DNA of 59,691 bases, filler included, from Bipalium vagum (lineage: Eukaryota), in NCBI GenBank assembly GCA_037834085.1. It is 3 parts of 3 records of this genome, joined end to end, with 100 filler letters (N's around TTAATTAATTAA, not from the genome) between each part and the next. Parts side by side here need not be neighbours in the genome. Positions count along the whole stretch, not along the records: positions 41,492 to 59,691 come from JBBMKC010036995.1; 2 more parts are not named here. One strand, 5' to 3'. A program made the translations under genes and the position numbers. This document shows, in pieces, positions 41,492 through 59,691 of this stretch. Numbering within the stretch: the first letter of the stretch is position 1; each line of letters begins with the position of its first letter. Under the pieces are notes generated by a model. It did not search any database. It was not told where the DNA came from and saw nothing but the letters and a program-made list of their open reading frames with translations.

Positions 41492-41619
41492 TTACTAATT
41501 TTTATGTATAGATATGTATTGCATGTTTGTATTCATAATAAATTTTTTTGATTTTAGGGTGCTTTTTATTTTTTTCCGTGAGTATATTTTCATAATCACT
41601 TGCACTGAATCTTATTAGC

Positions 41620-42290
41620 TTACCTGTAACACTAAATGGATTTTTAATCCATGATTTATCTTAGGAAAACGTTGTTAAATAATCTAATAGATGTTGCCTG
41701 TAAGTCTTGTAAATGTTACAAAAGTAATTTGCAGACTTTATCATCTTTTTTAGAATGTATTTCAATTAAAGATTTCTAATGTAGGAAAAAGTCAAAAATT
41801 ATTTTGTTTCACTTGAGCAATCCAGAACTGTATTTTTCTATGACAAAATGAAATTGTATTTCTTATATTAAAATATATATGTGGTATGTAATATATTATG
41901 TATCGTAATGTATTGTAATGATAAATTTATTTCATTGCACTTGGTAAAAATATCTGCTACAGACGCAACACTCATCAACTTCGAAGAATTTGTTAATAAA
42001 TCAATAAAAATTTTTGCCGAGTTTTCCGACGATAGGAAATCTAATAATTCATTACGAAGATCAAAAAATCTTACAAGTGCTTTTCCTCTGGAAACCCATC
42101 TCACTTCTGTATAAAATATCTGTTCCTTATATTCACTACCCATTTAATCACATAAAATTTTAAATAATCTGGAGTGGAGTGGTAATGATTTTACGTAACT
42201 AATTATTTTTACGACTTGATCAAAAATGGATTTTAAATAAGACTAGTTTATTTTGCTATTAATGCTTATCTATGCAAAACGCAGACTTTT
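41620..42290 (-). mobile_element. hAT (Buster/Charlie-like) transposase remnant
   Basis: LHSRLFKILCD*MGSEY..YTEVRWVSRGKALVRFFDLRNEL..ADIFTKCNEINLSLQ. Confidence 0.9.
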
Positions 42291-42361
42291 CTAGTATTTC
42301 TGCTACTTCAGAAATCCAGGTACAACTCATTTCAACTTTGATTTTTAGTGTGATTGACTTT

Positions 42362-42537
42362 TGAACATTTGATTGAAGACATTTCTATTGATTATTTGAT
42401 ACATTGCATTTGTTATTGTTATTTATTAATAAAGTGTTGTTCGTAGTTGTTTTAATTCATTCATTTGCATACACGTATTGACAAAAGTGAAGGGGTCAGT
42501 AAACTTTGCGAGCTAAGTGTTACGACGGTGTTCATAG
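42362..42537 (+). repeat. Dispersed ~170-bp repeat, copy 2
   Basis: Direct copy of 19521-19690. Confidence 0.9.
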
Positions 42538-42919
42538 TAAAATAACAGCGTAACAATGTGATAACTCTCACGAAAAGTGGTTTCTGTTGTATTTTCATTT
42601 ACAGATTAAACAATTTTTCTCATTTCAAATAGAAATTTTTTAGAGTCTAAAGTTTTGTAGCCATATTTTAAGAAACTTTTTAATTTGAAATTTAATAATT
42701 TAATTATTAATTAATTTTTTAATTAATAATATTAATATTAAATTTTGGAAGTTATTTCACATATAATTATGTTGGTTAAATATTCTAGAACTGGTATGCG
42801 AGAAACCAACCAAAAGAAATAAAAACCGTATTTTTGAATAATAACAATTAATATATAATAAAATCAAATGACATGTTGAATATCATAACAAATATTGAAA
42901 TGCACAAAAAACTATCTTA

Positions 42920-43540
42920 ATCTTTTGTTAAATCTATGGTTTCTTTGACCCTTCTTTTCTCAATTCTTCTCTTTGCCTTCTTGTCTTTTCTTCCTACCTT
43001 GGTTGATATCTTTGTGTCCGATGGTAAAAAGTTTCACAATATTTTTTTACATAACGAATAATTATTTTTCCAAAACTAGATAGGTTGTCAAATTATTTGG
43101 GACAGGTACAATTTTGTGAAACATGTGCTTTAAAGCCACACAAAGTTGTCGTATTCATATATTCAGCTATTAAAGTAAGAAATATAATAAAACAAATAAC
43201 CAAAACTATAAAAACAACAAAGAATATAAAAAGTAAGAATTTAAGAATATTTTATCATTTATTTAAACCATTTTTTGTGTATATCAGAACGTCAATACGA
43301 CCTGGTATTCGATCTCTCTGAATCATATCAAATTTATTATACCTAGAAATGAGTTGATCCTTATTTTATCACATCTTATATCCGTTCATATTCGAAGAAT
43401 TTCCTTTCCTTTGCAAAATTTAAAGTTTTTTGTCTGAGAAACTCAGTAATAGATCTTGGTTTATAATATGGAGGTAAAATCATGCATAAAAAAAATGTTT
43501 TTTGATCATCTTTTTGACCCCCATTTTCATTGGAATAGAT
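42920..43540 (-). mobile_element. Possible non-LTR retrotransposon ORF1 relic
   Basis: Frameshifted coding-like blocks ILPPYYKPRSITEFLR and RIPGRIDV, a knuckle-like LCGFKAHVSQNC and a basic tail KVGRKDKKAKRRIEKRR. Confidence 0.35.
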
Positions 43541-43876
43541 ATTATAAATTATTAAATTTTGTTCATCTACTTAAAAATTTCAGATGATTGTTTAATTAAA
43601 AAAATGTTCTTATAAGTTATATTTCATAATGTGCACACAATATCAAATACAATAACAAATTACTGAAGATAAATATTTCAATAATTTTCATAATTACCTT
43701 ATACATAAATAATTCTTTAGATTATTCAGAATTAACAACCAATGTGTTTTTAAATAATCAACATAAATATGATGTAAATTAATCATAAAGTGTGAAATAT
43801 AATTTTTTAAAAAACTTTAAAATAATTTTCCACCTACGTATAGATATTAGTGAGATTTTATAACTTTAAGTATAAA

Positions 43877-46800
43877 ATGGATAAAGTATTAGAACTTACT
43901 CAAATTTTAAGTTTTAATATGAACCATTGTTTAAATATCTTAATTAAGATTTATTAATTTATGTAATTTTAAATATGACAGATACAAATATCAAAGAGTT
44001 TATCAATCTTGTAATATTTGATATATGAAATTGAAATAACTAATCTCATTTTATTTAGAATCAAAATTTATTTTTCTTTAATATTCCAGTTGAGCAGAAA
44101 GAAGTTTTATGAATAATTTAGGTTATATTTCATATCTTTTATTTAGGAAATTTCTTCAAATTGTGTTGAAATAATTTTAAGCAGTAAATCTCAATCTACG
44201 GAAAATTTAGTAGAAGCATTGGAATGCATGAAGATTTTGTCTCGGGATGTCAGTATGCAACCATACCTTTGTAATGAAGATATATGGACAGAGTTATTGA
44301 AGTTATCTAACATTTATCAATATGATGAGCAAAGCAATGAAATTGCTCATTTTGCTAGTCATCCTACAATAGTTGTGGATCATACTATTAAGGTTTTGTG
44401 TAACATGACAAAAAATTTTTACTTTACTATTCCAGTGAATCTGTAAGTGATATTGTTATTTCTCTATTGACAATTTTTCTTTGTTAGGCAAAAGGAAGCT
44501 GTGACAGGCATTCTTAATAGAATCAAATTGTACGAAGAAAACTCATTAGAATCAACTATAAATATTAAAGTTTAACTATATAGCTTTATTACCCATAAAA
44601 TTTAATTATTTATTTCAGATTTTCGAAACAAAATTATTGTTCTTGTTAACAGCTCTTTTTTCTGAAACAAGGTTAATTTTTTTATTTGTTATTTATTATA
44701 ATTTTTGTTTCTAAAACAGTCCAATTTTTTGTCAACTTGTAAGTTTTCGTTCTGCAATGTGGAAAATTTCGTTCATCTTTCTATCGTATAAATCTTTTCG
44801 TAATATAAATAATGATCTAAAATTCAATTTAGAAAATTTAAAAAATATTTTCTTCAGATAAATGTTTTGTTATCCATTACTTTGAAATTTATGTATACTT
44901 CAAATTAGTTTTAATATTGAGTCTTCGTATTGTTCAAAAATATTACAAAATTGAAATGACAAAAATTAATAATATAAAAATTGATAATAAAGTTTTTATT
45001 TTAACACATTAAAGAATCAACCTTTGACAATTATTATACAGTAGTCTTTTTATATTAAACGTGATTTAAATTGATCTTGCTTCTCTCATATGAGCCGGTG
45101 GAGGAGATGTTTTCTTATCTAATCATGATTTAGATATCTGGCAGTTGTGCACAATGATTGTCTTCATCGATTATCTGCAGTAATGGAGTCACACCTAAAA
45201 AATGTCAAAGACCTTTCCGTTGACGAAGTACTTTTGGATTGTGAGATCTTAAAGTGTTTGTTCAACGTTCTTTACCAATCGGCGGACGAAATTATTGAAA
45301 GAGTAAGTTTTGTTAATTTTTAATAATATTATTATGTTATAATCGATTACAATAAAATATCAACCGATTTTAGAGTGTGGAAAAGGAGATGAATTCACTT
45401 CTGAATTGTCTGAAAAATTTGACAGTCGAAGTTAATCATCTGGAATCGATCCCAGAAAATGTCAAGGTAGAATTTATCAGGTGGCCTTTTGATGTTTCCT
45501 TCAATCATTTCCATTTCTATATTCAATCTTCATTTATGGACCTTAATAATTGATTATTTTTATTAATTGATAGCAATACGGCTAATCTCCTGACCTCAAT
45601 TCCGGACTCGAGTTTTCAGTATTTACTGTTCCCATCGAGAATCGAGACCGAAGAGAATCTTTATAAGGATCCACAATCTCTTCGATATATCCAATTGATT
45701 CTTAATCTAATCGAGCTTCGATTGAATGAGGTTTTAATTATTGATCCATAGAAATTTCATTTTTACTAAAGAAAATTTTATGGAATTTTTGATTTTCAAA
45801 TAATATTTTTTACTTTTTTGAATTTGCTATTTTAAATTTTTCTTGACATTTTTCAACTAGAATACTCATTTATTGGAAACTCTTGCTCCTTTGATGCATG
45901 CCATGGGAAAAGGATGCTTGGCCGAGAGAAATATTCGAAAATATTGTCGACTTAAAGTATGTTTGTTAATATATTATTGATTATTTTATAAAAAAGCATG
46001 AATGTCGCAAAATTAAAACAATATAATCTTTGATAATAACTTGAATTGTTAGATAATTTTTTTAATTAATTCAAATATATTATTATATTATTAATCAATA
46101 TATTAATTGATTTAATATCAATCTAATAAATTCAAAATGAAATCAACACGATGTGAACAAAGTGCGGTCTGTGTAATAAATTTTTCAAGCGTTACAATGG
46201 CAATATGAAGATGACAAAAAAATCATTTTAATGCAAGGTTAGGTCAGGATGACAGTTGAACGGATATTTAAACGTTATCAGAAGTTTGGTACAACAAAGT
46301 ATTCCAAAAATTCCGGCCTCAAATCAAGTGTTTTAAGTTAAGTTTTGATTTTGAAGATTATCAGAAAAAAAGTCAAGAAAGAAGACAGTTGTTCCAAAAT
46401 ATCAAAATGATCAACCAAAGAGAGCTCAAAGGCGTGCGAAAAGTTGTACAGGAGTGTTGTGCCAAGCTGTGGAAGGAAAATTATAATAATGGACGATGAA
46501 ACATTGTCCACTCGATCTCAGCCAAGTTCCAAGCAATGAATATTGCAGCGTAGTAAATGGCCATGAGACAAATGCTATTCATAAAATTAAGTCTAAAGGA
46601 AAATTCTGTAAGATTGGAATATGCCAAGCAATTGAACAAAATGGAGATATTTTTAGATCTTACACCTATTATGGTACAACGAACGCAAGTATTTATTTGA
46701 AAGAGTGTATTCGGAAGATTTTCATTCCATTTATCAACAAGTACAAATAAAATCGTGATGTCTTGTTTTGGCCTGATCTCGCAAGATACCACTATGCAAA

Positions 46801-48886
46801 AGATGTTCAGGAAGAATTTTTTGAAGAAAATATTGAATGTCTCAGAGAAAGACAACAGTTCAAATACATCTCAGAATCATTCGATTGAAACATTTTAATC
46901 TTTGTGCAAGCAGAAAAATTCCGTTTCAATACCAAAGTTTAAAAGAAAATGGATTGACATTTCAGAAAGAGTCTCGGAAAAACATGGTTTGAATCTATTC
47001 AGAAACTTTAAGAGAAAACTTTATCAAACTTTGAAGAATGGTGTATGTTAAATAATAAATCTGTCTGTAGATCATAAATATATTTTCTTCTCGTTTAACT
47101 TATATAGCTACAAGTATTAATAACACTACTCTACAATTTTTAACTTTATAATTTAATTTTGTGACATTAAACCCAGTTAATGCATTAATACATTTATTAT
47201 TATTGAGTTATAATATGAATAGTTCAAATATAAATTTTAATCTGGAGATGAATAATAATTATTAATAATAAATGTATTCCTAATTCCTTCAAATGTTAAT
47301 TAACCTGAACATTAAAAATTAGGTCTTGCCTTATATGAAAAAAGAGGTTATGGAACTTCCCGAACATGGGAATTCTATCAGAAACAAGTCTGTATTATTC
47401 ATTGTGAATATTTATGCAATAAAATTCTCTGCGTAGATTGTGCAAATTGTTACAACATCCTTGTGAACAAGTGACAGAATCTGTAGCATTCTTTCTTTTT
47501 ATTCTGTGCAAAGAAGACGGTAAGTCAAGGCAAGTATGAAAATGAATAATTTCACTCCGCATTGATTTTAGTTGAAAGAGCAATCAAATATACGGGGTTC
47601 GGTAATTTTGCTGGATTTCTGGCAAGGCACGCATTATTGTCAAGGTCGAAGAACCAAGATTACACGAGTTACAGCGATTCTGAAGATTCGGACACCGAAG
47701 AATATTTAAATGTAAGAGATAAAGTGAATCCAGTCACGGGGAGAGTTGAAGAGAATCCTACAAATCCATTGGAGGGCATGACGGAAGAGCAGAAAGAATA
47801 TGAAGTTGTTCGACTGATGAATCAAATTGATTTACTTCAAAAGTAATAGAATTTCGTATAACTTATTTAAAGTATTATTATTATTCTTTATCTGATGATT
47901 TTGTCCATCAAATACAAAAGTAAGAAAATTTTTACAGCATATACAAATAAAGCTCACAGAGTTTCGACTAACAAATCATTTATAGCAAAAGCAACTATAA
48001 AAGCACCACTTCTGATATATAACTGAGGTTTCAAAATGTTAAAAGCTCTGGCTGGTTTAAAACTGTTTATAAATCAAAAATTTATTAAACACATTTTTAT
48101 TAATCAAAATGTGACTGTTTTTATTGATTATTATTTATATAGTAACGAGTTGGATTGCAAACTTGATTATACAAATGTTTTTAATTGGAAGCATGACAGA
48201 CAAAAATGAGTTGGAAAAAAACTTGATCCAAAAAATCTTCTGAAACGAGTTCTGAGTTGTGGTTCTGTTGTCATCAATAAAATGATTAGAAGAATGGAAG
48301 GAACACGTTTATATGTGTGTACACAATAAACGATTTTTTTCTCAAATCTGTACAGAAGACTCAATCAATTTCTTTTAATCGTCATCTTTCATTTTCGTGT
48401 TGAATTCACTTTGCAACCAGTCTTAATAGTCGACCACTTTACGACAGTGTTTGACGCCACCGATGACAAGGATATCTGTCCTTTTTTCTCCATAAATATA
48501 TTTCACGATCAAGTTGAAATCCAGCAGATAACCCAAACCCCAGGGTCAATAAAAAAGTGATAGGTCAAATAGTTAATTATGATGAATGGTATTTTAACGA
48601 CAAAGAAGAAAGACGATTTCCTACCAAAAATATACACAAAAGGTTATTTCCTGACTTTCCAAAGATGTGAGACAAACAGGTTGATTTAGATGATTAATAA
48701 TATTTAGTTATTAATTTTTGCTTTCTGTAATTGGAAAATATCATTTTTGTTTTTTAAAAAATTGAATGATTAATAATGGATTTTTTTAGACAAGGAATAA
48801 TAAAACCTGGTGTCATTACCGAAGATGGCGGTGTTCGACCAGTTGAAAGTGTGCTGGAACTTGTTGAAAGAGCGAAATCTGATTAA
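43877..48886 (+). CDS. RIC8: Ric-8/synembryn (G-alpha GEF and chaperone). Exons: start uncertain (43877 or 43975) to 44010, 44059-44103, 44147-44442, 44488-44569, 44619-44671, 45134-45302, 45374-45480, 45574-45730, 45861-45956, 47323-47387, 47437-47519, 47572-47842, 48790-48886
   Basis: Continuous spliced frame. Motifs: [61 protein letters not shown], CK2 segment YSDSEDSDTEEY, VNPVTGRVE and NPLEGMTEEQKEYE. Confidence 0.94.
46137..47050 (+). mobile_element. DD37E/TRT transposase remnant in a ric-8 intron
   Basis: IIMDDE, CQAI, GTTNASIYLKECI and VLFWPDLARYHYAK. Same family as 23603-24878 but more decayed. Confidence 0.85.
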
Positions 48887-50469
48887 GTGGATAGAGAAAG
48901 ACCACGTGGTGATGATCACTAATGTTAAGATTAACATTAATGGTTAGAAAAGAGTTCTCCTGTCATGTCTTGTCATTAAATTGTTTAATTGAACTCATTT
49001 AGTTCATGTTTTGGATCACAATCTTATTTTAATGTTACACAATAAAGTTGTTTATTGATTTGGATGTTTTTATCTAAAAATTATAGGCCTACCAGAATTA
49101 CGTGAGAAAGTAGAATTTTAAGGTAAAGTGGAAATAAGCAACAATGCCTATATCCTATCGACCTCTTATAGAAGTAATATAAATCCGATCACTAAGAAAC
49201 TAATGTAATACAAACTCAAATAATAGGACCACAATTCATTCAATTTAGATAAGACCTTGTTTCTGCGGTTAAATTTCCGATGATAATGTGAATCCTTGAA
49301 GTATCCTGCTTTTTGTAACTGTTGACATGAACTAAATATTTTTTATATTTATTTTCATCTTTAGAGAAATTTTTTTAAAAAAATAACATTTGATGATCAA
49401 AATGTGCCAATAAAAATATATTGTCAATTCTTTTCTTAAATAGATTAATACATGATGTAAACATAATTAATATTTATTTTTGTTTTTAAATACTGATGAA
49501 AAATGGTACAGAAAATATTTGGATGATTTTTCTGAAATGGAAATAGGAAAAATACATTTTTGTATACATGTCACAATTATATGGAACAAGATTAATTTTT
49601 AAAATTGTAAGACTTATTACTGTTAATAAAAAAATTCTACAAAAGAATCTTAGAGAGATTATTTGGAAAAATAATATATGCAACACTTTTTTCATGTATC
49701 ATAAAACTCACTACCAATTAAGATCTTTAATTTTTTTCCAGTTTTTACTTTCCAAATATCAATTTTATGGTTTTATTTAATATTAACTCTGTTGGAATTG
49801 TGACCCAATTTATTATACTTTTTATCATATTTATCTTACAACCAAATCTGTACTAAATAAGAAAACTTATTTATATATGATTAAATCAAAACCAATATGA
49901 GAAAAAGAAAAATTTGACAAGCATTAATTTTTTAATAATAATAATATAACTTAATAATATAATAATAATAGTATAACTTACTAAAAATAAATTGTATACA
50001 AAAAAATTTAATATTAAAAAATATAAATAAAATATATTGATAAAAAATTATAACTAAAAATAAAACAATAATTAAAAAATGTCTATAAAAATCCAAATTA
50101 AAAATAACAAACGGCACTTACATTTACCGCAGACATAGACGAATTTCTGCATAATCAGATCCATCACGGCAAAACATTATATCAAGGCAAATATTCAAAA
50201 TAAATCACCCACGAAGATCAAATTGAATACAAATACGATTAAGTCAACAATTCAAAAACACATTAACAAGTTATTTATGCGAACAAGTAATATTTCTTGA
50301 ATTTTTATAATCTTATTATATTTTCTCTTATAATTTAAATTTTATAATTGGTAATTCTAAAGAATTATACAATTACTTTAAACTAAATAAACTCACTAAA
50401 TTAAACCCTCAAGTTGGTAAATTTTAATATAATTATACAACTGTTCTAATTAAATATCTTATAAATAAG

Positions 50470-50861
50470 TGTTGGGGTTTTGCCCTAAAATCAAGTAACT
50501 GTTTTTGTTTTCTCCTTCACTTCCGTTGCAGATATTTTTATTTTTGTAGTTCACACACTAATTAGGGTGGTGAATTACCTACCTTTGATGGCTTTTGAGA
50601 CACTGATTTCTTTATCAATGCGAAAAGATTTCCTCCCTTTAATTAATCCTAAACTCGGGGAAAGTTTTCTTACAGAGGATTGTTCAAACGGCAATCACTT
50701 TCGTTTTGTAAAATCACTTAACCATTTGTCATTTACTATCAATAAAGATTGAAAAACATTTCGTTATCTTAGTCGATTAAAAATCAAAGTCAGATCACGC
50801 TTAAAATAACCTTCTAACCGTTAAGCTCTTATTTTTAGTTCCACTTTTAAGAGACTTAACA
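50470..50861 (+). mobile_element. LTR (TGTT...AACA) of the Trp-PBS retrotransposon family
   Basis: Colinear similarity with 21024-21373 (TTTGAGACACTGA, TGCGAAAAGA, GAGGATTGTT, GCAATCAC, TCTTAGTCGATTAAAAATCA, AACCGTTAAG). No clear TSD, so the 5' boundary is uncertain. Confidence 0.85.
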
Positions 50862-50914
50862 AACCAATATGCTGTGATATTGCTTATGTTCCAGAAAACA
50901 ATTAACACTGTACA

Positions 50915-51000
50915 GAGGACAGGCGCCTTGGAATGAAAATCCACCCCAAACAATTACTGAACCTCCTTCATGTTTAACAGTTGGAGCTATGTAGTTCAAC
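50915..51000 (-). mobile_element. Tc1 transposase fragment
   Basis: NYIAPTVKHEGGSVIVWGGFSFQGACP. Confidence 0.8.
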
Positions 51001-54000
51001 ATCTTTTTTTTTCGTTATGAGATTTGTTCTTCAAGAACTAGTGAAAGTACTGGGAAATTATATAAAAAAATGTTTATGCCGATCTTACCTAGTAACATCT
51101 ATATTTATATCATTTATTTATTTTAAAAATAATTAGTAACTAAGTAGTACCTACGATGAGTTCGGACAAAAGTTATGATGATGAATAAATGTATAAAAAT
51201 GATTTTGTCATGAGTTTTCCGTTTTTTTAAGAAATCATAATAAATAGGTCTCATATGAGAACTTGAAAAGACGAGATTCTCAACTCATTACGTATAATAA
51301 TGTATTTGACGCAACCATGATGACTAATAGATGGACAGTGTTAAGCCAGTGACTTACAGTGGGGGGTTGAGATCAAGGTTGTATGTAGATTCCAATTTCA
51401 GATCAGATGATCGCCCTAGAATAGCGTGCTCAAGTTCTCAAATTATTTTAGCTGGTACTGATTTAATTCAAACTTGATTTCCAATACTATTCTTAGATTT
51501 ATCATGCATAAAAATAACATCTTTAATAATAAGATCAATCTATTGCTTTGTGAATTTAATTAGAAAAGAGAATAATACTTATTTGTTTATTTCGCCAGTT
51601 TTCTTGTAATTTCTATATTATATAAAAATTATTTTAACATGGTCCAGGTGTTAATATTTTCTTTCGATCATTATTCTATGATAACATTTTAAAGTTTAAT
51701 TATTTTTCTTATAATCCTTATTTTTTATTTTTTTTATTTCATATCTTTTTTTGTAATAATTTTAATAATTATTAATAGTTTTTTTATTAAGAGAAGGAAA
51801 ATATAAAAATAAAGTTCAATTATTTATATAAAAGATTTGAATTTTTATAAAGGGGTTTATTCATATAATAAACTGATGTGTACAAAATAAAATATACCAA
51901 ATGAAATATGTGGCACCAAATAATGAACTATTTATTATCAATAATAAATCAATCAGAAGAAGAATGTTAAATATTTGACTATTTAAGTGGCAGTCTCCAC
52001 AGACATTATGTGACGGATAATGTGACAGATTAAATTAAATGTATTAACATGCAATAATATTTTTGTTAAAATGAAAATTTAAATTTTACCATTATTATTA
52101 TTAATATTATTTATTGAAATACATTGATAAATTTTTTTCTACAATTTCTCGTAATAGACTTTGTCTCTGTTCCGTTATTATCTGTTTGTATTTACTGAAG
52201 CTTCTTTCAAAATCAATTTTTTTATATAATCGTCATTTTTGAATGATCGTTTATCTTTCACAAGTTTAAGATATACTTAAAATTTTAAAATAAATAAGAT
52301 TTTAAAATTTTTTTCAATTATTCCTTTAACTGATTGTCCCATATTAATAAAAATCTACTATGTAATCTGGTTTTACTTACCAAAGACAGTTTTCAAAAGT
52401 GATTAGACTGAAAATTCATTGATTCACGTTAGAGATATTGAACTATCAAATTTTCATGTATTGCCTAATTATTTATTCTCTTTTCAATATAAAACAATTA
52501 ATACAAAAATATGAACAGTCTGCTAATTTAAGTAGTTTAAGAGACATAGTGATTACCTTTGATTTCTCTTGACCAAAGAATTTAATGAAAGATATATAAA
52601 AATGCAAACCTTTTGCAGAGTTCTAAATAAATTAGACAAGTTTTTTGAAAAAGCTTATAAGGTGCATAAAATTTTTTTGTCGCATGTGGTAATAAAACCT
52701 TAAATGATACAATAAGAAATTTTTAATCTTTGTAAAGAGTTTTTTCCATTTCTTCAAAACTTTTTATAGCTTTTTTCTTTTTTTTAATTTAAATTTAATT
52801 TTTAATTCTTTAATTTTCTATTAATAGTGAATGTGAATATCAGATTTTTCATGAATTAAGTTTTAGTAACGTTCTCTTAATGATTAAATATAAAAAATCT
52901 TCACAGTACATATCAAAATGTTCTCTTTTATGAAAAAATCTACTATCTTTCAACTAACTTCATTATTCCACTGGTACAAAACTCAAATCCTAGTGTATTC
53001 GGAAGATCTCATACCTTGGGTGTGTTATATTTAGTAAAACTGCCATTTCCATAGTGTTGAGAAATGAATTGTTTGATGATTATTTAATAAATATTTCACT
53101 TGTTTTTCTATATTTTATTTTTTTTTAATATTTTTATTTTTGTATATATTTTATTTTTTTATTTAAATTGTTCAAATCATTTTTAATTAAACCATTTTTA
53201 GTTCACACTTTTTCTACGAAATCTAATTTATCTACGAATATATTTATTTATAATTTTCTTAGTTTCTTTGCTTGGGTTTCAAAATAATAATATAATCAAT
53301 TTATTTATTTCAAGTGGGATTAAAAATATGCGATATACGGGATGCATATTCATCAATTATTCGGTTAATTAAAATTCACATTTCATTACTAAGGGAAAAA
53401 GTAAATATTGTATATAGAACTAACAAAATCACATTTATTTCCATAAATAATACAGGATAACTATACTGTCCTGATCATTCACAAAATTTGATCAAAGTTA
53501 TCACAATTTCTGCTCAGTAAAATGAAGATATATAAATAAAAATGAGACAAGTACAATCTAAGTTTTTTATTTTAAAATGATCTGTACTGTTCAGTTTTTA
53601 TTTAACTACAAATATAGAAATAAAAGTTTTTTTCGGAATTTATTTAATTAATTTCATTATTTAAATATCAATGGAAATACAATGGTTCATTAAACTAATT
53701 TGTTCTTTATTTGTCACGGAAATAATGTCTTTTGTCTCGTAATCCCCGAAGTTTTTAGTCTTGAAATAATAATTTCTATTTTTAAGTTTAAAAATATAAA
53801 GTTTTCCTTAACAAATTCTTTTTAAACTCTCTTGCTAAATCAAAAATGAAATTAAAAAATCCAAAAGAAGTCTAATTATTTTAAACCGGAACCCTTAAGA
53901 AAAGACAAAATATTTAAATATATTAAATGTTAAAAAAATATCAAATTTAATATATATTTACAATTTTTCTTAAATATTAATAAAAAGGTTTTCAAATTTA

Positions 54001-55891
54001 ATGATCATTAAAATAAAAATTTCATAATTTTTTTAAAAAAATTATTGGCTATATAAATATACTTTTATGTTTTACTTAGTTTTTTTTTTCAGTTAAAAAG
54101 TTTAAAGTTGAAGTTAAAAATCAAAAATTGAGCTTTTAATTGTTTTTATGATTAAAAAATTTAATTAGCAAATTGAGAAACAGAGAATTAATCTTTTGAT
54201 TCAAAATCAAAAATATTAATGAAATTCGAATTTCATTTTCAAAAACACGATAATTTTGTTATTTATTGTTTTTTTTATAGTTAAAATATAAATAAAAATA
54301 TTACTTAGAAAAAAATATCATCAAACTATATCTTGACATAAAACTGATAACTAATTGAAAATAATGAATATTTTTAATTAGCTGGGCCGAAATTTTAATT
54401 TTTCTTACAATAATAATAATTTATCTATTTTATTCACTGACTGATACAGATGAACAAGTAAAATTAAATACGAAAGTAAATCTCATTATTGTTCTAAGAA
54501 AAGTATAAAATACTACTATTAAATAATTTTTTAGTAAATTATTATAAATAATTAATATTTTTAAAATTATTTTAATTAAAATACTCCTGTTTACCTGTCT
54601 TGCATCCAAATATCAAACATATCAAATCCGATGAACGGCTTGAGTGAAGTATTTGTAGGAAAATATAAGTAAAAATAAGTAAATTCATTCTTCTATCATT
54701 CATTTCATCTTTTGTAATTGTTAAAATTTTATAAGATACCAAATCTAACAGAAGATTAAATATTTACAAATCAACCAATTAGAGAATATTTAAGAAATTT
54801 CATTAAAACAAATTAATTATATAACTAAGTTATAATTTAATAATTGAAAATGTAACATGAATTAGATAAAATATATTTTGTTTTTCAAGCATTTAAGTTT
54901 CTGACAAAGAAAATATTTGAATAGCGAAAATATACGAAAAAATTAACTAATGAATTCGACCTTCAGCCTTAGACTGAAATTAAGTTTGTCTCTTTAACTA
55001 ACATATGGCATTGATCAACCTTTGTATTAAACAAAATAAAAATATTTCGATTAATATATTAATCAATATTATTTTCATAACTTTAAGATGCTAATACATC
55101 GATTTATCGACTAATGATTCTGATTAAAAATTGAAATGACTTCATAATTAATTCATTAAAACAAATATTAAATAGAATGATTTAAATGCATTTATGTAAT
55201 AAAATCTTTTTAAAGTCTTAGAAAATGTCAATCTTTAAGTCCAAAGTTTCTGAACAAATAATTGTTTTTTACATCTTATATACTGTACAAAGAAGAATTT
55301 GTTCATAAGTGAATTAGTTATGATATTTGCAATTTGTTTTAATTAGTAAATATGTTTGATTACTGTGTTGTTGTTTTTTAAATGAGTTTTAAACAAGATT
55401 TTACTGATTAATTACATACTTATCAATCTAAGCTTTTTAATTCTAATTTATTAATATTTGTTTTCTAAAATAGATATTACAAAAATAATCTTTAAGATTC
55501 ATTAAAAAAAAAGTCAAATTCATAAAAATTGTGAATTAATTTGAATCAGTAAAAATAAATTTAAAAATGCACGATTTGATCAATTTTTTAAACCTCAATT
55601 ATTTATCTCTACTTTTTTTTCATATACTTTTAATTTAAAATGTTCAATTTTTTGTTTATATTAATACTTTTATCTACAATGATTAATAGATTATTAAAAA
55701 TTAGAAAATAAAGAATTTATGAAATTTATTTTCAATAAAATTCATGGTTTAAAGTAATAAAAAATTATTTTAAGAAGACACAAAGTAAGTGAAAAATAAT
55801 TCATACACTTAATAAAATCAATAGTGTAATAAGTCGATTAAAAGAATTATTTTTAAATGTAAAGAAAGATCAAAACAACAATAAAAGGTTT

Positions 55892-58800
55892 TCAATCAAA
55901 ATGTTCGCTGCTTTTCTTTTCCTCACTTAGAGTGTTACTTATTTTCACTGATTCCTGCCTTGATTTCGGGGGTGTATCGATCAATTGCTCTTGTACAGAT
56001 TCTTGTACGTCAATGACTTCCTCATAATCAGAAAGAATGTTAAACAAATCGTCTCTGCTTTCATTAAATTCTCCTTCTTCCATTCCTTCTCCAACAAACC
56101 AATGGATAAAACTGCGTCTGGCAAATAAAATGTCAAATTTTGAAGACAATTCTTTTATTGGAGATATTATTGCTCTTCCATTCACGAGCATCGTTGCGCT
56201 TTTATTACTGGTTCCAATTTCCAGACCTTGCACATAAGAAGGTGGTTGAGAATTGACACCTAATTTGAAGCCAGTTGGACACCAATCGACAAACATTATT
56301 TCCTTTTGTTTTTTCAATTTTGACAGTGATATATTTACGTCTTGTGGACTTACTAAGCCACGAAATTGTAAAACACAGCTTATGTAAACATTTTTCTTAA
56401 TATCAGATGTTATGAGCTGATGATCTGGACGAAAAAGATTTCGTGTTAAACAATCAGTAGTCAATAGTTCATGGTCTGATCTTGCTTTCGAGTACATTGG
56501 AGAGTGACTTGATGTAACAAAGTGAATCCTTGGATATGGAATAAGATTCGTGCCCAATTGTGATAAATCAGAATTAATGGAACTTTCAAATCTCAGAGAA
56601 ACAGTAATATCACTGAAAAGATGAGATAAGATTCGATTAATATTATTATAAGTTGGATGAATTATGTCTAAGAGATTTGTACAGATATCAAAAGTAGCAC
56701 TGTTATTTAATGCAGTAGTAATATTGGAAATATCTGTGCTTTCTTTGATACTTAATATGCTATTATAAGGTTCCACAATAGCTGTGCTTAATGCCAGACT
56801 AGGAAAAACAGTCATCTGGTATTGGAAATATTTGGTGAAGTCTGTAGACAATGATTCCATCAGTAAAGAAGTGAAACCAGATCCTGTACCACCACCTTGG
56901 CTGTGAATAATGAAAAATCCTTGCAAATAATCACAATTTTCGACTAAATTTCGAATTGGATTCTTAATCTGTAGTAGATATTTTTTACCTATTGTAAAGC
57001 GGCCTCTTGCAAAATTATTACATCCATCTTCAATGCCACTTATCAGATTGTCAGGATTAAAGAGATTTCTGTAATTTCCTTTTCTTATTTCGTCTGTGTA
57101 CAACAATTATCAAATAATTATTTTGTTGGGAAGTTTTGAAAAGAAAAAATTAATTTAAAAATAACCAAAAGAAAATTTTTTTACAGCTGGAAATTAATTA
57201 TTAATATTTCCATTAATATTATTTTCAGCGACGAAACCATTTCTTGGAATTCTCACTTTATCAATGCAATTTCATTAAAGTTAACATTTGAAACATTTTT
57301 TTAATAATCTTATAAATAATTGTATAATAAAATTTGAAAATTATATTGTATTTTTTAATTAAGGATTCAATTTTTTTATCTTTTGACAGAAATAATAATA
57401 TATTAATAATAATCCATATAGAGTTGTTGTGATTTCTGGATTGAAACTTAATAAATATTATTGTTTTTAGATATTATTTGATTTTTTCCATATGGTTATC
57501 GTAAAACCTAACTATTATGTTGGTGCAAAAATAATGCATCTTTTATAACTTCAAACTTAGCATATCATAACTCGGACCAAACAAACATTTATTAATCAAA
57601 GTAACATCCTTGTGATTCCACACATTTCTGCCAACGCAAAATAAGCTTGTTCATACCAGAAACAGAAATCCGTTTTTATGCACCTCACAAATTCCAAGAA
57701 AGCGTTTTCAGCGACGGCTCGGTTGTTGAAGCACTTACCTTGAAGGAAGTTTTGCAGATGTTTGAAAAAATATGGAGAATGGGGCAGAATTTCGTAACCC
57801 AGTTCTTTAAATTTCTGCAAGCTTGTGAGGTCCTTTTCTGTTTACCAAAGCTGGACTCAAAATTTGTAATTTTTAGTGCATATCGTTGATTTGCTGACAG
57901 TAACTGTTGGACGTAATCGTTTTTCCAGAATCCAGGAAATTGAAATGGATCAAACCATGTACACACCACCAAACGGTTATCATTACCGTTTTTGTTGCAA
58001 TTTTTGTTTCGGAAAGGTTTTTGGAGGTTCACTTTTGTCCATGCATTGACCAGAGCGTTGCCTAGTATTGGACAAGATCCATTTCTCATCAATGTTACAA
58101 TTCTATTGAGAAATGGATCGTTCTTGTACGGAAAAGAAGGGAAGACGCAACTTCAAAGCGACGTAATTTTTGGTTTGCATTGAGCTCGTGTGACACCCAT
58201 TTGTCCAGCTTCTTCACTTTTCCAATTTGTCTGAGGTGTCTCACAATTGTTGAATGGTGAATCTGAGGTTCTTTTGCAACTTCTTTTGTGGTTTTCCTTG
58301 AATCAGATTCGATGATAGCATCTAATTGATCCTTTTCTACAACTAATGGACGGCCACGACTTTCTTTATCCTCTAGACTATAAATATTGCTTTCAAACTA
58401 TAAGAACCAACGCTGAACTGTTTTTTTGTTCAAGCTTTCTATGCCCCATACTGCATTAATATTTCGTACTGTTTCCGCAGCGCTTCTGTCTAGCTTGAAC
58501 TCATAAAAATATATTTTACGGAAGTCCTTTTTCGACATCTAAAACACATAGTTTTCATTTCTAAATAAATGAAATATTTAAATTTTACTTTAAATTATTA
58601 TTTAATTAATGCTCTTAAAGAAGTGAATATTACTAAGAATAACTAAGAATAAATTAGATTTTAAAGTGTATTGTTTAGTTTAAAAAAATGCTTTAGTTAA
58701 ACAATGCAAAAAGATGCATTATTTTTGCATCAACCTAAATATAAAAATTATTGAGTCAGAAATGGCTTGGTTAATATTAACACTTGTCTTATGGTTAAAA

Positions 58801-59300
58801 AATTAAGTATCATTTATTTTTCGGATAATTAAAACAAAGAAATTCTATAAGTTCTTCTATTCGTATTTAAATATAAAATTTAAATTTCAAGAATTAGAAT
58901 TAATAAATACCTTTAATTCAAAAATTTTAAATTTCTCATGTTCTTTTAATAAAATTTTACTATTTTATTATTATTATCTTTATTATTAAATTTCTTTAAA
59001 GTTCTAAATCTAAAACTAAAATCTTTCATACCAATAACTGTTGGTTCCAAGTCTATGGATACGCACCTAGGTACAAAATTACCACTTTTGACTTCTGAGA
59101 AAAAGGTTTTAAAAGCTTCACTGTCATCATCCACTAGATTAAGTTTCAACCTCCCAGTTGCTTCTATACCATGTTCTACACAGAATAATTCCCAGGTTGC
59201 GTTAGATATTTGTATTCCAGCTTGACCAACATGAACGCAAATTACTTCTCTCTTAATTTATGACTTAATGTCAAACATAAATTTAAAGGAAATTTACCAT
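55892..59300 (-). CDS. Highly divergent alpha-tubulin, 474 aa. Exons 59300-59298 (ATG only), 59251-59032, 57093-55892
   Basis: [65 protein letters not shown] and [13 protein letters not shown] are alpha-type signatures. The intron directly after ATG is typical of metazoan alpha-tubulins. No stops or frameshifts. Confidence 0.93.
57515..58738 (-). mobile_element. Near full-length cecropia-subfamily (Hsmar1-like) mariner in tubulin intron 2, inactive
   Basis: 30-bp TIRs TTATGTTGGTGCAAAAATAATGCATCTTTT and reverse complement TTAGGTTGATGCAAAAATAATGCATCTTTT. Transposase from 58538: [43 protein letters not shown], frameshifted. Confidence 0.93.
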
Positions 59301-59414
59301 TTAACTAAAGAGATTATAATAATATCAATTAAAATTGAATTATTGATTTATTTAAATTACCAATAATGGATCAATATAAAAAAACAAAATAAAAATAAAT
59401 TAAAAATATGGAAT

Positions 59415-59691
59415 TGTTAAGATATTAAATGGGTTGATAAAAGATGTTAGAAGTTGGAGCTTTAGTTCTGCTTAGGTCGCAACGGTTGAAGGTTGCTTAA
59501 AATTGTGTTCGATTAATTGAATAAACTGAGAAAACGATTTTGGTTTAATAGTTTTATTTGAAATTAATTTAAAAGAAATTATTACAAATGAGTGATAACA
59601 ATTCTGACCGATTTTGATTTTATTAATTAAGGTTATTATTTATAAAAATCCTCTCGCTCTTAGGCTCAGAGGTCCTCAATCAAGAAAAACA
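59415..59691 (-). mobile_element. LTR-like copy in reverse orientation, 3' end at 59415, running off the window
   Basis: The reverse complement ends in TTAACA and shares AACCTTC-AACCGTT, GCTCCA and TCGTT.TCT.AGT with 50470-50861 and 21024-21373. Confidence 0.55.

Follow-up and report, generated by a model that had tools for sequence, protein, structure and literature searches.

A divergent Bipalium vagum alpha-tubulin with glutamine at catalytic position 254 belongs to a flatworm gene family that may leave beta-tubulin GTP unhydrolysed

The stretch of DNA analysed here, referred to throughout as the window, comprises 59,691 nucleotides (filler included) of Bipalium vagum sequence from GenBank assembly GCA_037834085.1; it is built of three parts joined end to end with 100 filler letters between each part and the next, and positions 41,492 to 59,691 come from record JBBMKC010036995.1. 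The minus strand carries an alpha-tubulin gene of three coding exons (1425 nt) that encodes 474 residues, and in this gene the codon at the position of the catalytic glutamate of alpha-tubulin, Glu254, is CAA and specifies glutamine. The features of the gene are listed below.

59298..59300, minus strand: initiator ATG, the sole coding bases of the first coding exon, as read from the sequence; the donor GTAAAT adjoins it directly.
59252..59297, minus strand: intron 1, 46 nt, GT...AG, with its acceptor AG at 59253-59252.
59032..59251, minus strand: exon 2, 220 nt, residues 2-74 and the first base of a split Asp codon.
57094..59031, minus strand: intron 2, 1938 nt, phase 1 in the codon equivalent to Asp76; donor ATTG/GTATGA (GT 59031-59030), acceptor TACACAG/AC (AG 57095-57094).
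55892..57093, minus strand: exon 3, 1202 nt, which completes the Asp codon and adds 399 residues and the stop codon (55894-55892).
56534..56596, minus strand: T7 loop and start of helix H8, with the changes G246S, V250S, E254Q, F255L and Q256G that mark the clade described below.
56558..56560, minus strand: CAA, Gln at the position of Glu254.
56366..56368, minus strand: CAA, Gln at the position of Leu318 in strand S8, a site that changes together with 254 in the clade.
55895..56014, minus strand: C-terminal tail of 40 residues.

Both introns are of the GT-AG type, so that four of four splice sites are canonical, and an open frame of 474 codons at 34% GC is more than would be expected by chance; the intact reading frame and splice sites described in the initial annotation stand. 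An in-frame TAA lies two codons upstream of exon 2, and the methionine must therefore derive from the ATG/GT junction. The N-terminus produced by this splice (M-REV) matches MREVISINVGQAG of P0084, a relative from Dugesia ryukyuensis. The position and phase of intron 2 are common to two further relatives, L001 (...tctag/AC GAG) and L002 (LEPTVI-G/gt). An intron within the Asp76 codon and another after the ATG are the classical intron positions of animal alpha-tubulin genes. The large open reading frame (ORF) behind exon 3 spans 57106-55892 on the minus strand and carries both tubulin Pfam domains; the exon contains GGGTGSG, T5, H7, T7, H8, the M-loop, the alpha-specific S9-S10 insert, H11-H12 and the atypical tail. 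Translation of exon 2, which encodes ...DLEPTVI, reveals the nucleotide-binding loops GQAG (T1) and DLEPTV (T2), and a Pfam Tubulin match was also obtained on an ORF overlapping this exon. Exons 2 and 3, of 73 and 399 residues, were searched and aligned separately.

The identity of the product as an alpha-tubulin is clear. Pfam searches of exon 3 returned PF00091 (Tubulin; 2.8e-32, 113 bits against a cut-off of 33) and PF03953 (Tubulin_C; 3.6e-29). When compared with the PDB chains by phmmer, exon 3 aligned without gaps to alpha-tubulin residues 75-435 (E about 4e-117, about 47% identity); the best 60 of the 170 PDB matches were all alpha chains, with 9F3B among the best, and canonical alpha-tubulins were matched in the first search at 45-48% identity. 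In trees with beta-tubulin as the outgroup the window protein nests inside alpha. Assignment to beta, gamma or another tubulin was rejected on the basis of this alignment and tree placement. The nucleotide-binding motifs are retained, namely VGQAG and DLEPTV in exon 2 and CNNFARG (NNxARG), GGGTGSG and PTYNN in exon 3; in the LNNSA motif N206 is kept and D205N and E207S are changed.

The PDB alignment places “dlsqlgtnl” over “DLTEFQTNL”, making the glutamine the equivalent of E254, with N249 and D251 kept; the protein itself lacks one residue in the H1-S2 loop, so that this glutamine is number 253 of its own sequence. The claim of the initial annotation that Gln (CAA, 56560-56558) occupies position 254 beside a conserved D251 is thus upheld by both the minus-strand reading and the ungapped alignment. 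The other alpha residues of the site, R2, D251 and K352, are retained. Only one public run holds this DNA; its contigs match 55800-57542 with zero differences and so repeat CAA rather than GAA; this is weak independent support for the codon, since the run may be the source sample of the assembly. Elsewhere, the shortened H1-S2 (K40) loop has no Lys at 40, where Asn aligns instead. The tail, which follows DYEEV, has a net charge of -4 and ends in HFD, without EEY or EEF.

The distribution of residue 254 was established by a profile search of 1.84 billion cluster representatives, from which the best 150 alpha-like representatives were taken; 323 collected proteins were aligned to one profile and residue 254 was read from the profile column. 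Canonical alphas have E and beta-tubulins K at this column. Among the 129 alpha-like sequences of the tree set (90% non-redundant), E is found in 80, Q in 21, D in 14 and another residue or a gap in 14. All of the close relatives, a set of proteins as near to the window protein as canonical alphas are, or nearer, have glutamine; they include Schmidtea polychroa Q7Z1L8 and Dugesia ryukyuensis A7M6D9, and this recurrence speaks against chance.

In a FastTree phylogeny the window protein and P0005 are sisters (support 1.0), inside a 15-tip clade (0.73, Shimodaira-Hasegawa-like, SH-like) of 14 proteins with Q and one with H. IQ-TREE (LG+G4, 1000 ultrafast bootstraps, UFBoot) gave values of 100 for the window protein with P0005, 87 on addition of P0049, 96 on addition of P0100, 80 for a 13-tip core and 89 for a 26-tip group. 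The 13-tip core, which holds both named planarian proteins, has Q throughout except for one H. All named members of a wider 40-tip group are flatworms, and 32 of its 40 tips are without Glu at 254. Apart from the two planarians, the named members of this wider group are Fasciolopsis buskii and Sparganum proliferum with Q, Paragonimus westermani with A and Calicophoron daubneyi with E; more distant relatives of the window protein are thus present in trematodes and one cestode. A word search with the clade profile alignment yielded mostly fused or tandem canonical tubulins and zero new members. The tree placement thus indicates that Q254 is a family character of a flatworm multigene family and no peculiarity of this one gene. 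Glu has not been retained by the relatives (all 13-15 clade members have Q, save one with H), and the one respect in which the initial annotation has to be revised is its treatment of the gene as a single oddity, since the tree makes it one member of a flatworm-wide multigene family.

Several further observations were made within this group. Five Q254 alpha-tubulin genes (L001-L005) were found on genomic contigs of run SRR33002330, and these fall into two classes of GC content at third codon positions, 0.37-0.43 and 0.84-0.89; there may be two organisms in the run or one genome of very heterogeneous composition. P0093, the S. polychroa protein, and its close relative P0104 combine Gln at 254 with Asn at 251; both acidic residues of the GTPase-activating site are thus amides. 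In a sister group of alpha-like proteins (P0211, P0216, P0220, P0204, P0215, P0219 and P0282; UFBoot 100) residue 254 is deleted, as a single residue, or replaced by Val or Ala; judged from the alignment, this group represents a second, different route to losing the catalytic Glu.

The total length of the 15-tip clade is 6.77 substitutions per site, over which Q has been kept in 14 members and H is found in one, and the Gln codons at 254 include both CAA and CAG; the amino acid is therefore conserved, and this is not a site that stopped mattering. Between the window protein and P0005, with 64% identity of core residues, dN (non-synonymous substitutions per site) is 0.238 and dS (synonymous) is saturated and not computable, and 57% of the 230 same-residue codon pairs differ synonymously. 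Saturation of dS applies to all pairs but P0091/P0100 (dN/dS 0.50); hence the figures given here are dN and the proportion of synonymous differences. In a leave-one-out comparison, 53 columns showed no variation across canonical alphas and the other clade members, TNLxPYPR and the H11-H12 surface included, and the window protein keeps all 53; of the 63 columns that do not vary among the other members of the clade it has changed 2, a number that falls inside the range of those members. The selection that had been proposed for this gene is supported by these measures (dS saturated, dN 0.24 to the nearest relative, no family-invariant column lost). A pseudogene reading was rated low given this retention of columns.

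The change at 254 does not stand alone. Set against 21 canonical alphas, the clade differs at about 40 positions where canonical alpha hardly varies, several of them between residues 279 and 308. The tightest changes are G246S, E254Q, F255L/I, L318Q and M398L, followed by V250S/A, E168Q, A174S and K280R; for the signature S246, Q254, L/I255, Q318 and L398 the window protein reads S, Q, L, Q and L. Canonical alphas have E/L at the 254/318 pair, and within the flatworm group 16 tips have Q/Q and P0197 has H/H. Strict coupling of the two sites across all alpha-like proteins was considered and rejected: there are Q254 lineages without Q318 and two E254 proteins with Q318. Coupling is limited to the flatworm group, where covariation, together with published work on the same pocket in a pironetin complex, suggests a contact between the two residues. 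In that complex, residues of the T7 loop, H8 and S8 move or line the pocket and the position of E254 is disturbed (PMC4931326). G246, V250, F255 and L318, the last of which adjoins C316, are T7/H8/S8 residues of the pironetin pocket, and the clade changes at these residues therefore indicate that the catalytic module has been remodelled as a whole.

Intron 2 and the remainder of the record contain the following additional features.

57513..58738, minus strand: degenerate mariner/Mos1-like transposon, a high-copy repeat lying wholly in intron 2 in the same orientation as the gene.
58538-58398: PF17906 (Mos1 helix-turn-helix) match within this element, E 6e-13.
47562-47846, plus strand: exon-like ORF matching Ric8/synembryn PF10165 (E 1.8e-30, profile positions 341-429).
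41868-42143, minus strand: 91-residue ORF, MGSEYKEQIFYTEVRWVSRGKAL..., with no Pfam match.

The transposase frame of the mariner-like element is broken into short ORFs, and the remark in the initial annotation that transposable elements near the gene are degenerate holds for this one. Contig depth rises from about 20 in the exons to thousands in the transposon, with loose contig ends at 57513 and 58738; the element belongs to a very abundant repeat family in this genome. The ORF at 47562-47846, by its profile match, probably belongs to a Ric-8 gene that lies next to this one on the opposite strand. That at 41868-42143 looks similar to the C-terminal portion of transposase-derived proteins of the hAT type. 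The sequence analysed contains no beta-tubulin of this organism.

Microtubules owe their dynamic instability to alpha-E254. Quantum mechanics/molecular mechanics (QM/MM) calculations show E254 directly deprotonating the lytic water, with R2, D251 and K352 as the other alpha residues of the site (PMC10319017). Human alpha-E254Q tubulin polymerises, and in its microtubules guanosine triphosphate (GTP) is present throughout the lattice by high-performance liquid chromatography, EB3 is bound all along, and the polymer is stable and free of catastrophes, with mild curvature artefacts (PMC11893814). The biochemistry of E254 mutants invoked in the initial annotation is thus real, and is now available for exactly E254Q (PMC11893814). 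With E254Q set in an otherwise preserved site and the glutamine under selection, the best reading is therefore of an isotype that would join the lattice without triggering hydrolysis. As with any alpha-tubulin, the window protein would be expected to fold, to hold a non-exchangeable GTP of its own and to form a dimer with beta-tubulin. The T7/H8 module of the incoming dimer would then dock on the beta-tubulin below and fail to start hydrolysis of its GTP, leaving the interface below the Q254 alpha in the GTP state. A lattice rich in the isotype would carry a permanent “cap” and resist catastrophe, and where incorporation is sparse, stable GTP islands would form.

On the sequence evidence we judge it likely, with some reserve, that the gene encodes a functional divergent alpha isotype of a flatworm multigene family in which Q254 has been fixed by selection and does not trigger hydrolysis. 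The wider proposal, that flatworms keep multiple alpha paralogues with a selected module (Q254 coupled to Q318, with S246 and L/I255) beneath which the GTP of beta-tubulin is never hydrolysed, is put forward more tentatively, at a little short of an even chance. For this protein itself we infer a hydrolysis block, entry into microtubules and service in long-lived arrays, for example those of flatworm sperm; the roles in sperm, cilia and rootlets suggested in the initial annotation are hypothetical. The S. polychroa gene is reportedly a divergent, testis-expressed alpha-tubulin (Simoncelli et al. 2003). In a spatial atlas of Fasciola hepatica three of five alpha isoforms are testis-predominant; the atlas does not link these to Q254. 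The literature on planarian reproductive markers and on schistosome gonads contained nothing on Q254 isotypes.

A number of points weigh against an isotype that blocks hydrolysis in the lattice. Support for the clade is moderate (0.73 SH-like, UFBoot 80). A nested subgroup among the Q-bearing proteins, P0239 and P0249, shows E/L at 254/318, which looks like a coupled change with possible reversion to the canonical pair. The T7/H8/S8 region is remodelled at several sites, and its behaviour may differ from that of a lone human E254Q. Asp251 is kept in the window protein and most of its relatives, and many paralogues, the window protein not being one of them, have Asp253 (eight clade members carry it beside Q254); these acids could support slow hydrolysis. 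Finally, a search of public runs found the stretch in a single run of DNA contigs and in no RNA run.

It is unlikely, although these acidic residues speak for it, that the isotype still supports hydrolysis, at a slower rate or along a different path through D251, another nearby acid, or beta-E69 and water wires, with the remodelled T7/H8 module making up for the missing carboxylate, and so tunes dynamics instead of abolishing hydrolysis. QM/MM does show higher-barrier routes via beta-E69 and water in expanded lattices (PMC10319017), and discussion of Toxoplasma alpha3 also allows for “slowed” activity (PMC10056924). Yet the window protein has Ser at 253 and not Asp, the lone E254Q change leaves GTP throughout the human lattice (PMC11893814), and over a long tree the Gln has been conserved and not swapped for Asp or Glu. 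We give a somewhat smaller chance to the possibility that the protein is not a bulk lattice subunit at all but sits at the end of a polymer or serves as a seed, or belongs to an accessory or non-microtubule structure, for example the central core of the flatworm 9+“1” axoneme, with its tail as a docking platform; Q254 would matter there since no further dimer needs hydrolysing. The tails are highly variable across the clade (40-107 residues, without EEY, as against 14-16 residues in canonical alpha), the K40 loop is altered, and the roughly 40 changed positions, with those at 279-308, would also suit such a role. Against this, the alpha alignment is ungapped through all lattice-forming elements, the columns invariant in canonical alphas are retained, TNLxPYPR and the H11-H12 surface included, and nothing specific indicates such a role.

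Least probable of all, and in our view improbable, is that the window copy is a silent or recently dead duplicate of a functional family, unexpressed and with a transposon in its intron. The lack of an RNA run among the public runs holding the gene, the 1.2-kb mariner-like element in intron 2 and a long terminal branch (0.35 substitutions per site, IQ-TREE) are in its favour. The transposon, however, is confined to the intron and touches no exon, the 474 codons are open at 34% GC with four canonical splice sites, and none of the 53 universally invariant columns is changed, with the two of 63 clade-invariant ones within the range of other members. The preferred reading remains that of a functional isotype that would enter the lattice and leave the GTP beneath it intact.

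To our knowledge alpha-E254 has been treated as invariant in alpha-tubulin, and the only studies of GTP-locked lattices that we know of used analogues or engineered mutants, with artefacts such as curved growth and segmented EB binding. A family that has long kept E254Q together with changes in T7/H8/S8 may show how a stable GTP lattice avoids those defects, and would be a natural, evolution-optimised counterpart of the E254Q and E254N mimics. It may also show isotype choice, rather than microtubule-associated proteins or modifications, setting microtubule lifetime. Its members are testable candidates for subunits of the highly stable arrays in flatworm sperm, and if the reading is true they would provide, encoded in the genome, a “permanent GTP lattice” for long-lived arrays, among which sperm cortical microtubules and the 9+“1” axoneme are examples. 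With relatives in trematodes and a cestode, and a pocket overlapping the pironetin site, the family is also relevant to tubulin diversity in parasitic flatworms.

In comparison with known systems, the planarian proteins Q7Z1L8 (P0093) and A7M6D9/BAF75867.1 (P0084) stand nearest by descent: they belong to the same clade and share Q254 and Q318, long non-canonical tails and the shortened H1-S2 loop. They are nevertheless only 44-48% identical to the window protein, representing different paralogue lineages, and the S. polychroa protein additionally has D251N. Within the literature searched, no paper noted loss of E254 in a flatworm or any animal alpha-tubulin. The gene family and the biochemical principle are known; a conserved, phylum-wide animal family with exactly E254Q and a covarying partner appears to be undescribed. 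Beta-tubulin itself has Lys at 254 in our census, a non-acidic residue like Gln, but this concerns the other subunit and the intradimer interface. It is accepted that GTP at the N-site is never hydrolysed because the T7/H8 residue with which beta-tubulin faces the nucleotide in the subunit below it is non-acidic.

The alpha3-tubulin of coccidians (Toxoplasma and its relatives) lacks D251 (T) and E254 (Q or H in some species), and has an MPREI N-terminal insertion and a very long tail; a role in stabilising polymers has been proposed for it from its sequence (PMC10056924). Like it, the window protein is a natural alpha isotype without E254 and with a long C-terminal tail (40 residues); unlike it, the window protein keeps D251 and starts MREV without the MPREI insertion. 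The two are most likely a parallel and not the same family, of independent origin in different eukaryotic supergroups. The closest match in the catalytic site is the engineered human TUBA1B E254Q/TUBB3 (PDB 9F3B, 9F3R; PMC11893814), in which the same residue is changed in the same way at the same position with R2, D251 and K352 unchanged. The human protein is a canonical isotype with one substitution made in the laboratory, whereas the window protein is natural, about 47% identical to it, and adds G246S, V250S, F255L, Q256G and L318Q, a 40-residue non-canonical tail and the absence of Lys40.

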